NCBI GenBank assembly: GCA_054661495.1
Contig: BAAFSQ010000349.1
Location: 1 to 9,391 of the forward strand
Length of the DNA: 9,391 bases
Origin: Zygophlyctis sp. KS116
Taxonomy: Eukaryota; Fungi; Chytridiomycota
Reading direction: 5' to 3'
Both the position numbers and the translations under genes were made by a program. Positions 1 to 6,369 of the stretch are shown in pieces. The stretch's first letter is position 1; every line of letters begins with the position of its first letter. The notes below the pieces were generated by a model. It had not been told where the DNA came from. It ran no database searches and was given only the letters and a program-made list of their open reading frames with translations.

Positions 1-109
1 CAAATAACGCAACAACAAACAATATAAGTGGGAACTTTTGAACTATAAAATAACTAATAAAAATGTCTGACTTAGATTAGTGCTACCTGTTTGTTTTGCG
101 TTAAGATGT

Positions 110-523
110 CGAGGTTTCAGGATCATATTTCTATGTTTGACAGGGTCTGATTCATATATTAATATGTCATCCAGGTATGCATAAAGACCTCTACCAATCA
201 AGTCCTGGAGAATCGTATCCATAGATTTCTGAAAGTGTCCTGGGGCGTTCTTTAATCCCAATGGGATCACATTATACATAAATTTGCCAAATTTGGAAAC
301 AAAAGAAGTTGATAATATTAGGTAGGATAGCTTGAATTAGTAACCCTAAGAATCAGTAATCTTATTTAGTTCTCTATAGTCGATACAAAGTCTTAAAGAC
401 ACATCTGGTTTTTTAACAAAAAGGACTGGGCAGCCGCCATCAGCATTAGAGACTGACATATTTCATGATTCCAACCCATCGTTCAAAGCTTTTCGAAGTG
501 CGTCTTCCTCTTTGGATGAAAGC
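110..523 (-). pseudogene. pol: Reverse transcriptase remnant of element A
   Basis: Manual translation gives [55 protein letters not shown], then a disrupted segment, then TSFVSKFGKFMYNVIPLGLKNAPGHFQKSMD...YAYLDDILIY (YLDD at 177-166). These are Ty3/gypsy RT motifs. Similarity ends near 110. Confidence 0.95.
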
Positions 524-544
524 TTAGGGTCTAACCCTAAATGT

Positions 545-625
545 CCCAAAGCTCCAGTATCTACTAATCCTTCCAATTGGTGTCCAGAAACTTCAATCTG
601 GGTTAATATTGGTCGGCATATTGGA
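545..625 (-). pseudogene. Retropepsin (aspartic protease) remnant of element A
   Basis: PILTQIEVSGHQLEGLVDTGA (DTGA at 561-550). It is fused almost directly to the RT N-terminus, so the rest of the protease is deleted. Confidence 0.85.
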
Positions 626-699
626 GAATTCACGGTTAATAAAATGCAATAAGGAGAAGAATCTGCTCTATTTCCAGAAATTTCGTCAAACTTTTTGTT

Positions 700-1195
700 T
701 TTGATTTTGCATATAGAGTTTTCTTGGTGACCGAATTCAACATAATCTCGGCAAACTAAACAACATTTCAACTTGAGTAGAGTTTCCTTTAAAATCGAAC
801 ATTTTTCTCCTTCTAAGCTTTTCCATTTTATTTCGGAGCCTAATTAAAAATATATCCCTGAGATCCAATTTCACATCAGCATTCAAAGTTTTTATGACAC
901 TCTCAATCCCGAAATCCGAGTAAACGTCGAGGCCAGCCTGAATATTCAAAGATTCAGCATCTGCTAAGTGATTAGCCTACCCCTAAAAACTGTTCAACTA
1001 GAAGAGAATGCATGGAAATCACGCTATTCAGTTACATGGTAGTGACGAGATCTATCACGCAGGGCCTGATACCAAACTTTAGCACTACCAGAGAGAAGAC
1101 TAGACACAAAAGTAATCTTGGCGTATTTATAGAGAAGTTCCCAGGGGGAGTGTGAGTAGGATCCGAGAAAGACATTAGTTTGCACTTCAAAAAAC
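700..1195 (-). pseudogene. gag: gag remnant of element A (mostly missed by the ORF track)
   Basis: Manual translation from 1122 downward gives AKITFVSSLLSGSAKVWYQALRDR, the retrotransposon capsid L-x-G-x-A-x-x-W motif. A degenerate zinc knuckle (RLC...GHQENSIC) lies near 700-750. Confidence 0.75.
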
Positions 1196-1225
1196 TAATA
1201 TATATTTCTTCAAAACTATTAGGAG

Positions 1226-1236
1226 GTACTTTTTAA
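1226..1236 (-). other. Self-priming-type primer binding site of element A
   Basis: Minus-strand TTAAAAAGTAC begins 2 nt after the LTR end and is the exact complement of GTACTTTTTAA at 1296-1286. There is no TGG tRNA-type PBS here. Confidence 0.7.
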
Positions 1237-1982
1237 AATGTAACGGTCTTAGTGAAATAAGAGTAACAACCAAAAATACTTTGTATTAAAAAGTACAAGG
1301 GGTTACCTAACCTAACCCTACAAAAGATCCCTAGGTCCAAGTAAGCCTCCATAAGCAACAAGACTCGATCACTAATTCCGTTTACTTGAGTCCTTAATCT
1401 TTCAAAGCTCTCCACATAACTCGCCACTGATCCTTTTTGACAGAGTTTCTCCAACTTATCCATCACTGTTCTTTGATGATCCAGAGGATAAAAAGAAATC
1501 TTTAATTCCTTTGTAAAGTCTTTCCACCCTTCAACTTTCTCTTTGAGTTGGTCGGACCGATTTGTCCACCAATCCCTTGCTGACCCTCCAAGATAAAACA
1601 CAGCAAAGTCTACCAACTCCATTCCTTCAGATAACCCAAAATATCTCGCATATCTTTCAATTTGATCCACCCATGCGTTTATCTCCAATGCATCTCTTTT
1701 CCCTTTATAGAATTCCGGCTTAGGAGGCTTGACCACAAATTTCTTGCTAGCTCCACCATTCTCACCAATTCTATTTCTCCCAGCTTCTCCTTGCAGTTCT
1801 TCAATCTTCAGCTGTTGAGCTGCAATCGTTTCTTGACCGGACGCAACTGCTTTCATCAATTCATCCATTCTCATCCGCTGTTCTTCCAATGCCACATGCT
1901 GATTAGTAGCTGCAGCCATCAACTCATTTTGAGTTGTTAAAAGTTTGTTGATCAAATCGTTGTTCATTTCATTGTTACTCAT
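1233..1982 (-). CDS. gag: Ty3/gypsy Gag of element B. About the first 205 aa are genuine; the C-terminal ~42 aa read through element A's LTR.
   Basis: N-terminal coiled coil, then KPPKPEFYKGKRD...WVDQIERY, YLGGSARDWW, WKDFTKELKISF and LCQKGSVASYVESFERL (major-homology-region-like Q-x-GSV-x-x-Y-x-x-x-F). Confidence 0.92.
   Translation of the reverse strand: MSNNEMNNDLINKLLTTQNELMAAATNQHVALEEQRMRMDELMKAVASGQETIAAQQLKIEELQGEAGRNRIGENGGASKKFVVKPPKPEFYKGKRDALEINAWVDQIERYARYFGLSEGMELVDFAVFYLGGSARDWWTNRSDQLKEKVEGWKDFTKELKISFYPLDHQRTVMDKLEKLCQKGSVASYVESFERLRTQVNGISDRVLLLMEAYLDLGIFCRVRLGNPLYFLIQSIFGCYSYFTKTVTF
1239..1360 (-). repeat. 5' LTR remnant of element A
   Basis: Ends in GTTACA next to the PBS and has an AATACA poly(A)-like signal at 1287-1282. 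A possible TGTTG start is at 1360 (uncertain). The partner LTR is not in the window. Confidence 0.55.
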
Positions 1983-1989
1983 TGTTTTT

Positions 1990-2000
1990 CCAAGCTACCA
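1990..2000 (-). other. Primer binding site of element B, tRNA-iMet type
   Basis: TGGTAGCTTGG lies 2 nt after the LTR terminal CA. It is complementary to a tRNA ending CCAAGCU-A-CCA, and GCUACCA is the typical 3' end of fungal and animal initiator tRNA. Confidence 0.8.
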
Positions 2001-2002
2001 GA

Positions 2003-2171
2003 TGTTATTCTCAAAGTAAAGTTAAGTCTGATTCTGTTTATTCAGGTAAAGAATCTATTTATAAACTGCTATTTTAAGATGTGTTCAGAAATAGAATTCC
2101 TAAAATAACTATCTGATTGAATCGGTAAATCAGATCATGACTTACAGTCTAATGTTAGTCGTAATTTAACA
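2003..2171 (-). repeat. 5' LTR of element B (169 bp)
   Basis: Termini are TGTTA...TAACA. Minus-strand TATAAATA (2063-2056) and AATAAA (2042-2037) are present, and the LTR is followed by the PBS. The outer end is inferred from the terminal inverted repeat only. Confidence 0.8.
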
Positions 2172-2180
2172 GCAGAAGAT

Positions 2181-2255
2181 GGTTTCATAGTGTAGTTGGT
2201 TCATCACGTGAGCTTTACACGCTCAAGGTCCTGGGTTCGAGCCCCAGTGAAACCA
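2181..2255 (+). tRNA. tRNA-Val-TAC: tRNA-Val (anticodon TAC), intronless
   Basis: Acceptor stem GGTTTCA/TGAAACC plus discriminator A. Anticodon stem TGAGC/GCTCA with loop TTTACAC (TAC at 2216-2218). T arm CTGGG-TTCGAGC-CCCAG. A box 2188-2199, B box 2234-2244. Confidence 0.97.
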
Positions 2256-2267
2256 TTTTACTTTTTT
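2256..2267 (+). terminator. Pol III oligo-T terminator
   Basis: TTTTACTTTTTT immediately follows the tRNA. Confidence 0.85.
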
Positions 2268-2556
2268 AGTCAAACTGATGGCGCCTATTCCTTCCTCAAA
2301 CAGACCTCAACAGGTAGTTTGTTTACTTAATAATAGACATAAAGAGCTAATGACAACCTCAGAAGATTCAAAGTTGATTACTAAGAGGTCAAGAGAAAAG
2401 TGAAAATGAGGGAGAAGCGTTTACGAATTATCAACCATTCAGAGTGGAAGGGAATTTAACTGAAAATACACACTATTATACGATACATTTTGGTTGTAAG
2501 TAGTTGGATCAGTGATCAAGACAATAAACAAGTTTTAGGTTGGAAATATATCTGAT

Positions 2557-3289: not shown

Positions 3290-3450
3290 GTGTCAGGAGT
3301 CGAACTTGAACACTTAAGGGGTAATGCCCACTGCTTCCTTGAAGGTACATTTAAAGCAGCATCTACCGGATACTATCAATTTCTTGTACTAAGAACCTGT
3401 AAAGCAAGTAGGCGCATATATTGCACGTCTGCTTTTGCACTGTTGACTGG
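3290..3450 (+). pseudogene. Mutator/MULE transposase, 5' half of the DDE domain (remnant may extend left to ~2870)
   Basis: HCFLEGTFKAASTGYYQFLVL...SAFALLTG matches the MULE DGTFK...YQ...FALL motif, with the first catalytic D changed to E. Confidence 0.85.
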
Positions 3451-3555
3451 TATAGAGATTTGGCTTATAATTCAAGAAACAGATAAATACTTTAAAACCT
3501 AACCTTAACACTAACCATTCGTTAGCCAATAATCTACAACCCCTAGTCTCCAACA
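3451..3555 (-). repeat. 3' LTR of element C (105 bp, internally deleted)
   Basis: Starts with TGTTG directly after the PPT. 3451-3491 matches 5954-5994 at 40/41, and 3519-3540 matches 6122-6143 at 19/22. Confidence 0.85.
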
Positions 3556-3567
3556 TCACCCCCCACC
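3556..3567 (-). other. Polypurine tract of element C
   Basis: GGTGGGGGGTGA lies immediately before the TGTTG LTR start. Confidence 0.85.
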
Positions 3568-3754
3568 AAACGGCTGGAAGCGTCTAATTATGGGACATAT
3601 CTGGAGTAAAACCTCTGTGAGGGAAAAACCATGATATTTCGTGAGTTTGGTAAATCATTGTTTGACAAACAACTTTATACGTTTGTGCCCATGAGCATTA
3701 TCCAACGAAACTTCTTTAAAGGGCGGATTCCGTTGAACAACCTTAGTCTCCTTC

Positions 3755-4789
3755 TTAGACTTCCAATACGTTTGGATAATTAAAATTCTCTTCCAAAATC
3801 CAGCTGGGTTTTGGGTCTTTCCACTTCACAAAATAATAATAGTTGACGAGATCCGATTTCTTGTGATCTAAGACTCTATCTACCACTGCAGATTGATCAA
3901 AATTCATCATGGGTGAAACTGCCTTTAAAACACTTCCCGGTCTTTTGTACTCTGTGCCATCGGGTCCTGCCAATACGTATGCCCCTCCAGTATTCCTTTT
4001 AATCACTTTCAATGGTCCAACATACGCCGGTGAAGCCTTGTTCGGTCTTAATCCATCCTTGGCCATGACAAGAGATCCTTCCGGGAATTAATCAGAGCTT
4101 ATGATTCTATGACTCTTCGCAAAGTCCTTTGCTTTTTGAGTGTTCTTGTCGTTTATGTTTTCCCTTATAGCTGGATACACCACATCACAAAGATATCTTA
4201 AGCGAGCAACAATTTGCTCTTGAGATAGAGGATCAGATATCGCGTATTCCGAAAAATAGTTGAGACTACCTCCAAATAATAGCAAAGCTGAGATTTTCGA
4301 ATTTGTAAAGAATTAAGCAGCAGGTACATATTTATCCCATCTATCCCTAACACCATTGGCTTCGTAGCCGCTGCGGTGTGATTAAACTTTTCCGCTAAAC
4401 CAGTAGCACTTGAATGATAAGCAGTGATCATTCTGCGTTCAAGCTATTCGAGAATTGCTGATTAATTTTCGATACAAATTCCTTTCCATTATCACTCTGC
4501 AGGATTTTTTGAAATCCAACTTGACAGAAAATATGAAATAATGCTGAACTCACCGTTGTTGACTTCTTATTTTTTAAGGGCTGGAGAAATACAAATCTAG
4601 TTACCAACACGAGTAAATACTTGCAATTGTTCCTGGAGGGTGGCATTGATCTAATGGCAGTTCCGCTACGATTGATTTAAGAGGGTGGGATCCATGTCTG
4701 CCAGTATTATACCGCTGACAATCTACACACATTTTTACCGATTCTGAGGCTTCCTTACGCATTGTAGGCCAGTAAACTCCTCTGTACAT
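3755..4789 (-). pseudogene. pol: Integrase with GPY/F motif and C-terminal chromodomain (frameshifted)
   Basis: Zinc-binding YWPTMRKEA...CVDCQRYN; core KYLLVLV-TRFVFLQPL, ILQSDNGKEF and TAYHSSATGLAEKFN; YVGPLKVI; chromodomain VVDRVLDHK...YYYFVKWK...SWILEENF (~3758-3889). Confidence 0.95.
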
Positions 4790-4829
4790 AGGATTTTTGG
4801 TGTAAACAAGGTAAATTTTGATCCAGAGA

Positions 4830-5057
4830 TATAGTACTCAAAATGTTTAAAGAAAAAAATATGGCTAACAACTCTCTATGAGTTGCGCCATATTTCCTTT
4901 CACTTGTTTTTAGACTCCTACTGGCAAATGAGATGTATCTCGGTTTTTTAAGATCATCTAACTGGTAAAGAGCACCTCCAATACCATTTCCACTGGCAGC
5001 AGTAGCCACACAAAAAGGTTTGTTGAAGTTTGGATAATGTAACATTATATCAGACAA
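4830..5057 (-). pseudogene. pol: RNase H remnant of element C
   Basis: LHYPNFNKPFCVATAASGNGIGGALYQ...ISFASRSLKTSERKYGATHRELLAI. The catalytic TDAS motif is mutated to TAAS. Confidence 0.93.
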
Positions 5058-5099
5058 TAGAATTTCTTTAAGAGTCTGGTAGATTTGAGCATGCTGACT

Positions 5100-5710
5100 A
5101 TTATTAAATGTTTTGAGATGATCTTAGCCGATCAAGAGGCTCTGTTATTTTTGAATACAAAGGTACTAAGTCTCTGAAATAATTAAAGAATCACAACTGA
5201 CTAAACAAATGTTTGTGAGTAGAAGAAGGAGACCAATTCTTCATGACCAGTAATTTTTCTTTTGCCAATTTTATATTTTATACGGTCCCTGCTAATTCTT
5301 TAACCCAGAACAAATATCCCTGATTTTGCAAAAAGGCATTTCTTTATATTTACTTTTAGATTGTCAGAGTTAAGAATATCGAAGACTTCCGCCAAGTGAT
5401 TCATATGCAATTCTTTGTCACTTGAATGGATAATCAAATCATCAATGAATATTTTTACGAAAGGTAAGTGCGCTAATATGGTCAGCATAATTTTTTGAAA
5501 AACTGAAGATATCAATTTGATCCCAAAAGGGACTCCTACAAAACAGTATTGAGTACCATTCCAAGTAAATGTCATCTTTATTTGATCTGTTTCCTTTAAT
5601 CTAATTTGATTGAAGGAGCTTTTGAGATCCAACCTTAAGTAAATGACTGAGTTACTCAGGGATTCTAAGACATCCTTGACAGGGGGAAGCGGATAATTAA
5701 CTGATATTAG
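5100..5710 (-). pseudogene. pol: Reverse transcriptase remnant of element C
   Basis: NYPLPPVKDVLESL...LDLKSSFNQI...TFTWNGTQY...PFGIK...FQKIM...IFIDDLIIHS (FIDD at 5449-5438)...KKCLFA...VLG. Confidence 0.95.
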
Positions 5711-5730
5711 TATCTACCATGTTTTTCAGC

Positions 5731-5931
5731 CTAATTCAGTGCATTTGTTGCCACAGTTATAGCTGATCTGGGAGTAACTTCTATCTCCCTTAATCTTAAG
5801 AACTCTAGTTGCTTTGTCATGACATCCATCGAAGCCATTTTTGCAGCCATCTTAAAACTTTCAATCTGTTGTTCATTCATTTGAACATCGGCGGCTTCGC
5901 CTACTGATAATCCTAATCCAGCTTGAGACAT
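5731..5931 (-). pseudogene. Probable N-terminus of element C ORF1 (gag), truncated by deletion
   Basis: The ATG lies 9 nt after the PBS and inside the LTR pair. The assignment is positional only. Confidence 0.6.
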
Positions 5932-5940
5932 TATGATAAT

Positions 5941-5950
5941 TCAATTAGTA
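5941..5950 (-). other. Self-priming-type PBS of element C
   Basis: Minus-strand TACTAATTGA begins 3 nt after the LTR end and is the exact complement of TCAATTAGTA at 6000-5991 inside the LTR. Confidence 0.7.
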
Positions 5951-5953
5951 AAA

Positions 5954-6144
5954 TATAGAGATTTGGCTTATAATTCAAGAAACTGATAAATACTAATTGA
6001 TTCTCGCTTTCAGCAAGAAACAAAAACCCCTCTTAGGTAAGCCAAAGTCTATCAAAGATGACAACCCACTTCGGTCCTTCTCCTAACCACTGATTCCTCG
6101 TGTTAACATTTACTCCTCTCCTCGTAAGCCACTAATTTACAACA
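5954..6144 (-). repeat. 5' LTR of element C (191 bp)
   Basis: Starts TGTTG at 6144 and ends CTCTATA at 5954. Two blocks are shared with 3451-3555. Confidence 0.85.
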
Positions 6145-6369
6145 TCTGGTAAAAAGACACGGTTATATCTAAAGTTTCTCTCTATGATACAGCAGTTATT
6201 GGAATACGAATGGGCACCACTATATTTTACCTGTGATTATAAAAAATCACTTCTTAATGCAGTTCATCTAGTTCTTCCGAAGACTCGAGTTGTAGGCTGC
6301 TTTTTCCACTTTATGCAAGCTGTCTATGGTAAAATGGAAAAGGCGTGTGTAAAAAATTATTGGAATTGA
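6145..6369 (+). pseudogene. Mutator/MULE transposase, 3' half of the DDE domain
   Basis: SGKKTRLY...PLYFTCDYKKSLLNAVHLVLPKTRVVGCFFHFMQAV contains the second catalytic D (D-F/Y-E-like) and the MULE CxxH motif. Truncated after about 6345-6369. Confidence 0.9.

Follow-up and report, generated by a model that had tools for sequence, protein, structure and literature searches.

Gypsy-type retrotransposons of many families lie just upstream of tRNA genes in a chytrid genome

The window analysed here was the whole of contig C349 (9391 bp), one of the 1175 contigs of a 12.7-Mb chytrid assembly. A single tRNA gene was found in the window, on which ARAGORN and Rfam agreed: tRNA-Val(UAC), located at 2181..2255 on the plus strand, was scored at 65.8 bits against RF00005 (cut-off 29), was recovered in the genome-wide tRNA scan and is the putative Pol III target of the insertion described below. 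The T-rich stretch TTTTACTTTTTT, seen in the sequence directly 3′ of the gene (2256..2268, plus strand), is likely its Pol III terminator. On the upstream side, the 9-bp spacer GCAGAAGAT (2172..2180), whose boundaries were set by Rfam and by a three-way alignment, separates the gene from an LTR of 169 bp, TGTTA...TAACA, on the minus strand (2003..2171). This is the 5′ LTR of an element that we call family B. A genome search with 1990-2171 returned two further copies of the LTR, C350:4571-4739 and C591:3030-3199, which were 97-98% identical. In the three-way alignment the identity started at TGTTA (window 2171) and stopped at TAACA (window 2003), with diverging flanks beyond, and in both the C350 and the C591 copy an integrase gene and the polypurine tract AAGAGGGGGA directly precede the LTR. 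Both ends of the LTR were thus fixed, giving a length of 169 bp and an outer end at 2171. The first-pass annotation had placed the LTR end at this very position and had described a head-to-head arrangement of LTR and tRNA-Val 9 bp apart; the alignment bore out both, with the LTR on the minus and the tRNA gene on the plus strand. Inside the LTR, a TATA-like TTTATAAATAG and one AATAAA were found. Inward of 2003, read on the minus strand, come TC, then TGGTAGCTTGGAA (2000-1988) and then the gag ORF, indicating that 2003-2171 is a 5′ LTR that points away from tRNA-Val.

The sequence TGGTAGCTTGGAA (1988..2000, minus strand) is the primer-binding site, with 12 nt complementary to the 3′ end of initiator tRNA-Met, CCA included. 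The genome contains 10 copies of the primer-site 13-mer and a reversed control none; in all nine of the occurrences that were read, the 13-mer directly followed a sequence ending in CA. By pattern search, the tRNA matching the primer site is encoded by two genes in the genome, and it has an A1:U72 pair and a GGGCCCATAACCC anticodon arm. Given these eukaryotic hallmarks, we take the primer tRNA to be initiator tRNA-Met.

Family B is represented in the window by an 813-bp 5′ fragment only, running from 2171 to 1359 on the minus strand. The 5′ part of its gag (1359..1982, minus strand) matched Pfam Retrotrans_gag (6.6e-15) and Ty3_capsid (2.1e-8), both of which are carried by the ORF at 1982-1233, and gag is interrupted at 1358/1359 by the LTR of a different element (element A). 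The fragment showed about 70% DNA identity to a near-complete sister element on C512, and in a three-way alignment that included this sister the family B similarity stopped at about window 1369. The order of the pol domains and the polypurine tract were established on other copies and on the C512 sister, not in the window. The family B copy on C350 contains, by Pfam, a zinc knuckle, protease, RT, RNase H and integrase, followed by the polypurine tract and the LTR; it is decayed, with stop codons and a damaged integrase N-terminus. The order PR-RT-RH-IN, the polypurine tract and the 3′ LTR were read on C350 and C591. In the C512 sister, a gag of 336 aa is followed by PR-RT-RH-IN in long frames, and its gag has a CX2CX4HX4C zinc knuckle, before which the window gag is cut. 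The best solved-structure match of the sister was Ty3 Gag-Pol (7q5b, E 2e-83). Family B and its sister therefore show what defines Metaviridae, namely TG...CA LTRs, a primer site, a polypurine tract, PR-RT-RH-IN and a Ty3-type capsid. The earlier assignment of the window element to Ty3/gypsy was upheld by the Retrotrans_gag and Ty3_capsid matches in the window together with the Ty3 structure match of the sister.

The family B fragment of the window ends, and that of C350 begins, with an identical stretch of 27 nt (window 1369-1395, corresponding to 854-880 of locus L005 on C350), which is joined to element A on the window side and to unrelated DNA on the C350 side. The overlap may stem from a rearrangement or from a join made in assembly. 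A single split element was considered for the two fragments and rejected, because 27 nt is far beyond a normal target duplication. The C350 and C591 LTRs were likewise rejected as the 3′ partner of the window copy, their flanks being CATC and TAAG (element sense) versus CTGC in the window.

Element A is a different LTR retrotransposon that interrupts family B (1..1358, minus strand); its LTR outer end, ...GCAACA, lies at 1358. Fragments of its gag, protease and RT run off the contig end, with an RVT_1 match at 43-279. The LTR and leader of element A were 76% identical to those of an element on C167 that lies 11 bp upstream of tRNA-Asn. The element A family was without an initiator tRNA-Met primer site, and reading of its sequence suggested self-priming. 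Next to tRNA genes the family was seen at C167 about 11288-14429 (tRNA-Asn, 11 bp) and in the stack at the initiator tRNA-Met gene of C328. Two further repeats were noted in the window. A decayed gypsy element at 3450-5994 (minus strand) retains fragments of RT, RNase H and integrase along with a weak Chromo match (E 3e-5); a 41-nt direct repeat (3451-3491, 5954-5994) marks its two ends, and the element does not lie on the upstream side of the tRNA gene. A short MULE-type transposase fragment is found at 6211-6366 on the plus strand (Pfam MULE, E 7e-6, just below the cut-off).

The surroundings of tRNA genes were then compared across the genome. At least 62 tRNA genes were found by Rfam, with 63 of about 1120 candidates scored, and seven of the 62 were set aside (three abutting genes on C172, two with less than 10 bp of upstream sequence and two partial genes). 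The three genes on C172 (8086-8410) abut or nearly abut and are unlike the nuclear ones, so the contig is possibly organellar. For 14 of the 55 usable genes, an LTR terminus ...AACA was found 4-11 bp before the mature 5′ end, with spacers of 4, 5, 6, 7, 8, 8, 8, 9, 9, 9, 9, 10, 11 and 11 bp (median 8.5). The two initiator tRNA-Met genes were one occupied (9 bp) and one empty. In total, 15/57 tRNA genes, representing 11 isoacceptors, had a verified LTR end 4-11 bp upstream: Val, Lys (two), Gly, Ala, Ile, Ser (two), Asp (two), Asn (two), Leu, His and initiator Met. Every LTR terminus was compared with a second or related copy, and those comparison copies that reached the terminus diverged at exactly that base, or no more than two bases away at C1162; beyond it they continue as a primer site, a polypurine tract or some other flanking sequence. 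The arrangement of the window thus recurs at 14 other tRNA genes of the genome, indicating that it is not due to chance. A rough calculation agrees, since even 2000 LTR termini in 12.7 Mb would by chance place about 0.07 in 57 eight-bp windows versus the 15 observed. The first-pass annotation had proposed a tRNA-gene-targeting family on the basis of this one insertion. The census extends the proposal to many families with one narrow upstream window, and copies were not placed at random relative to tRNA genes.

The LTR ends that face tRNA genes represent at least nine LTR families, in either orientation. The U3 end faces the tRNA gene in the window and on C43, C365, C317, C236 and C167, and the U5 end on C532, C131, C309 and C328. 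LTRs were 169-313 bp among the copies measured. RT-RNase H identity among the tRNA-associated families ranged from 31 to 100%; family B and the elements of C512, C523 and C579 form a tight group (80-82% identical), to which the most distant families are 31-36% identical. These data support the conclusion, drawn from sequence, that integration just upstream of tRNA genes, irrespective of isotype, is common to many of the gypsy families found here. The gypsy population as a whole is very diverse for a 12.7-Mb assembly: at least 93 pol matches were found among 202 candidates, with 30-100% RT-RNase H identity to C512, and many of these copies have uninterrupted frames of 1100-1560 aa.

The assembly itself is asymmetric around tRNA genes. 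Contig ends were found within 300 bp upstream for 16 and within 300 bp downstream for three (one of them a truncated gene) of the 62 Rfam tRNA genes. Such contig ends overlap other contigs by 76-77 nt (for example, C131:1-77 is identical to C609:1-77), as expected when a graph with k = 77 breaks in repeats. Because short-read assembly breaks inside LTRs, most elements could not be linked to both flanks. The contigs of about 5 kb that were examined (C512, C523) each consist of a single retrotransposon with a truncated LTR at each end; contigs numbered in the same range hold many further pol copies, and the assembly graph could be used to link flanks. Downstream flanks shared between tRNA loci were paralogous tRNA loci, not LTRs. 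One pair provides an empty site: but for one mismatch in the spacer, two tRNA-Asp paralogues on C309 share the same sequence from -8 to about 134 bp beyond the gene, whereas the sequence further upstream is an LTR end in one and a promoter in the other.

Several searches gave negative results. None of the four 5S genes and not the one U6 gene carried an insertion, which is not significant given the 26% occupancy of tRNA genes. On C124 and C477, LTR ends of the C43 family abut non-tRNA DNA, with no tRNA or other Rfam match beside the end. Since these flanks, read in reverse, resemble tRNA promoters, they may be the far, promoter-side flanks of insertions. The contigs of three Pol relatives (44-56% identical) contained little beyond the element and no tRNA. 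Moreover, in a metagenome scan that covered 28 of 80 loci, no tRNA gene was found beside mostly distant integrase relatives; two of the scanned loci were close relatives (43-54% integrase identity) with almost no flank, and the rest serve as a rough negative control.

The target duplication was read wherever both sides of an insertion were available. On C43, a 223-bp solo LTR is flanked by AACA on either side and lies between tRNA-Lys and a retained promoter, made up of a TATA-like box followed by GTGCAATTTTC. A full-length element on C328 lies between two copies of TATG; its 3′ LTR is 9 bp from initiator tRNA-Met, and on its 5′ side the same TATG separates its LTR from the outer end of an A-type element. 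The shared TATG indicates that these 4 bp served as target for two families, one after the other. Five LTR-LTR junctions with spacers of exactly 4 bp were found, among them CATC on C350, CTTA on C591, AAAT on C503 and TATT on C493. A junction on C224 has a 1-bp spacer. At tRNA-Asp on C309, the end of an older LTR is 9 bp from the gene; within the last 10 bp of that LTR lies the end of a newer 3′ LTR, at 19 bp from the gene. A 5-bp duplication, GCAGA, had been predicted for the window. Every case that could be measured in the genome was 4 bp, however, and GCAG (2172-2175) is therefore the likelier copy of the target duplication in the window.

The distance to the tRNA gene was then set against the Pol III promoter. 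Upstream of 41 unoccupied tRNA genes (loci L008-L063), a TATA-like box with a median start at -32 from the mature 5′ end was found, together with a conserved GTGCAAWTTTT whose T-run is located at -17 to -12. In the 5S genes (n = 4), the TATA is at -29/-28 from the gene start and TGCAYTTT motifs lie further upstream. Judged by sequence, the upstream motifs of the tRNA and 5S genes resemble upstream Pol III promoters of the type seen in fission yeast or plants. The first base of 5S RNA is the transcription start. Applying the TATA-to-start spacing of the 5S genes to the TATA of the tRNA genes, the tRNA start is predicted about 3-4 nt upstream of the mature end, and the 4-bp targets would then lie some 2-5 bp before that start. 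On C43, 29 bp separate the TATA-like box from the insertion junction. For Ty3, the joining positions are -6 and -2, counted from the start site (PMC8632968). The spacing, which is closer to the mature tRNA than that of Ty3, had been read as a possible sign of a separate origin. This part of the first-pass annotation was not supported, as the position predicted from the TATA box agrees with that of Ty3 at the Pol III start. The distance of 4-11 bp most likely reflects short tRNA leaders, with the same geometry as Ty3. In the LTRs of C131 and C1:137530, a TATATAAAG box was noted about 25-33 nt from the tRNA-facing terminus. It positions a TATA some 35-40 bp ahead of the tRNA gene and could replace the displaced promoter.

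Taken together, we consider it probable (about 0.85) that the family B fragment integrated at the Pol III start of tRNA-Val, as part of a genome-wide habit, a TFIIIB tether like that of Ty3 being the likely mechanism. In the mechanism we propose, integrase would be tethered by TFIIIB about 30 bp upstream of the tRNA gene, as in yeast Ty3, and the cut would fall a few bases upstream of the transcription start. After a first insertion, TFIIIC would place TFIIIB again, measuring from the promoter within the tRNA gene; the same 4 bp would thereby remain the target, and elements would stack end to end. The integrase of Ty3 binds both TBP and Brf1, the C-terminal domain contacting TBP and a vestigial chromodomain contacting Brf1 (PMC8632968). 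No chromodomain was detected by Pfam after the SH3-like domain in the integrases of family B, C512, family D or the closest database relatives of the B/C512 group. In the AlphaFold model of the C-terminal part of the C512 integrase, an SH3-like barrel (176-228) was confident and the 57-residue tail had pLDDT below 60, and Foldseek with the C512 integrase model returned matches to the integrase core and C-terminal domain only, with no chromodomain. In the closest group, the last residues of the tail are a conserved KRIGIPIRVPSN, and most tRNA-associated integrases have LAPW...NQDYxYD after the barrel, the C883/C309 family having a looser form. Both tail motifs are no more than leads.

Other ways of producing LTR ends beside tRNA genes were weighed against this reading. 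Integration might be aimed at LTR ends within repeat islands, with tRNA genes as bystanders, and the many LTR-LTR junctions with 1- or 4-bp spacers and the repeat-rich contig of the window fit that idea. We regard it as very unlikely. Repeated use of one tRNA-defined site would itself give rise to stacks, and the solo LTR on C43 has its own 4-bp duplication, with an intact promoter and tRNA gene around it and no other element. Moreover, what adjoins the LTR at occupied sites is a spacer of 4-11 bp and not the end of another element, C309 being the sole exception, and the distance is fixed at 11 isoacceptor types. This constancy also bears on a selective explanation, in which integration is random and insertions survive only in the harmless DNA upstream of tRNA genes. 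Selection of this kind could be invoked in an assembly as small as 12.7 Mb, but it cannot yield a window 8 bp wide or the reuse of an identical 4-bp target. In the loci that were read, no insertions were found downstream of tRNA genes or in other intergenic DNA, and we consider random integration followed by selection extremely unlikely.

When yeast Ty3 was compared with C512 in RT-RNase H, it scored 262 bits, within the 190-272 bits of the other tRNA-associated families of the genome; common descent with Ty3 and an independent origin therefore fit these scores equally well. We tentatively raise the possibility that targeting of the tRNA start is a trait of a large and old gypsy radiation in chytrids, whose families, down to about 31% RT-RNase H identity, are mutually as far apart as they are from Ty3. 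The trait would either pre-date the chytrid/Dikarya split and be shared with Ty3 and Tj1, or act via a short conserved peptide of the integrase tail in place of the Ty3 chromodomain. It is also conceivable, if doubtful, that targeting evolved here apart from Ty3, Tj1 and DGLT-A, with a new geometry and different docking, which would account for both the 9-bp distance and the shortness of the LTR. A duplication of 4 bp versus the 5 bp of Ty3 (PMC8632968) points in that direction, as does the lack of a detectable chromodomain in the integrase tail; the conserved C-terminal KRIGIPIRVPSN of the closest clade could be a different docking peptide, and repeated emergence of tRNA targeting is known (PMC5006619). 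On the other hand, the insertion position given by the TATA box and the predicted start agrees with that of Ty3, and the Ty3 RT-RNase H scores like the genome's own tRNA-associated families.

Because many divergent families appear to share one narrow target, they form a natural series for finding the part of integrase that reads TFIIIB, and they make it possible to ask if the trait is old within the fungi or has evolved several times. Repeated hits at the same sites build ordered LTR stacks. In practical terms, the insertions break short-read assembly just upstream of about one quarter of the tRNA genes.

Among known systems, Ty3 of Saccharomyces cerevisiae (Metaviridae) has, like the chytrid elements, the order PR-RT-RH-IN and no canonical chromodomain, and it inserts within a few bp at the Pol III start of tRNA genes, whatever their isotype. 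Both Ty3 and family B use initiator tRNA-Met as primer. In contrast, Ty3 makes a 5-bp duplication, whereas 4 bp was found in every measurable case here, and it lies about 15-17 bp from the mature tRNA end rather than 4-11 bp. Ty3 is also one family, compared with the many that coexist in this genome; its chromodomain is vestigial, whereas none was detectable here; and the 5S and U6 targeting of Ty3 was not seen among the five such genes of the chytrid. Chromoviruses differ in that B, C512 and D have no canonical integrase chromodomain.

Tj1, whose host has Pol III genes that depend on TATA boxes, belongs to an ascomycete rather than a chytrid; its targeting has been shown experimentally in S. 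pombe, at 5S genes too, whereas the targeting described here is known from genome sequence alone. It is a Ty3/gypsy element of Schizosaccharomyces japonicus that inserts 1-10 bp upstream of tRNA starts, and the S. japonicus genome, like that of the chytrid, holds several related, clustering families (PMC5911963, PMC4600332). DGLT-A of Dictyostelium resembles the chytrid elements in being gypsy-type, without a chromodomain and inserted upstream of tRNA genes in either orientation, in a compact genome. It differs in its distance (13-33 bp upstream), in having gag and pol in a single ORF and in its amoebozoan host. Dp_NLTR-A inserts similarly close, 2-6 bp upstream (PMC5006619), but is a non-LTR element, also of an amoebozoan host. 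By published description, Tyl3, Ylt1 and Tyl6 of Yarrowia and Tca8/beta of Candida, which lie about 5 bp before tRNA starts or 6-30 bp from the mature end (PMC5911963), are Ty3/gypsy elements too, but of budding-yeast lineages. A 2018 review table of Pol III-targeting elements listed Ty3, Ty3p, Tj1, Tca8, Tyl3, Ylt1, Tyl6, DGLT-A and Skipper-2, with budding and fission yeasts and social amoebae as the only hosts (PMC5911963), and our literature search returned no report of tRNA-start-targeting elements from chytrids. The chytrid elements are a further example of the habit known from Ty3, Tj1 and DGLT-A.
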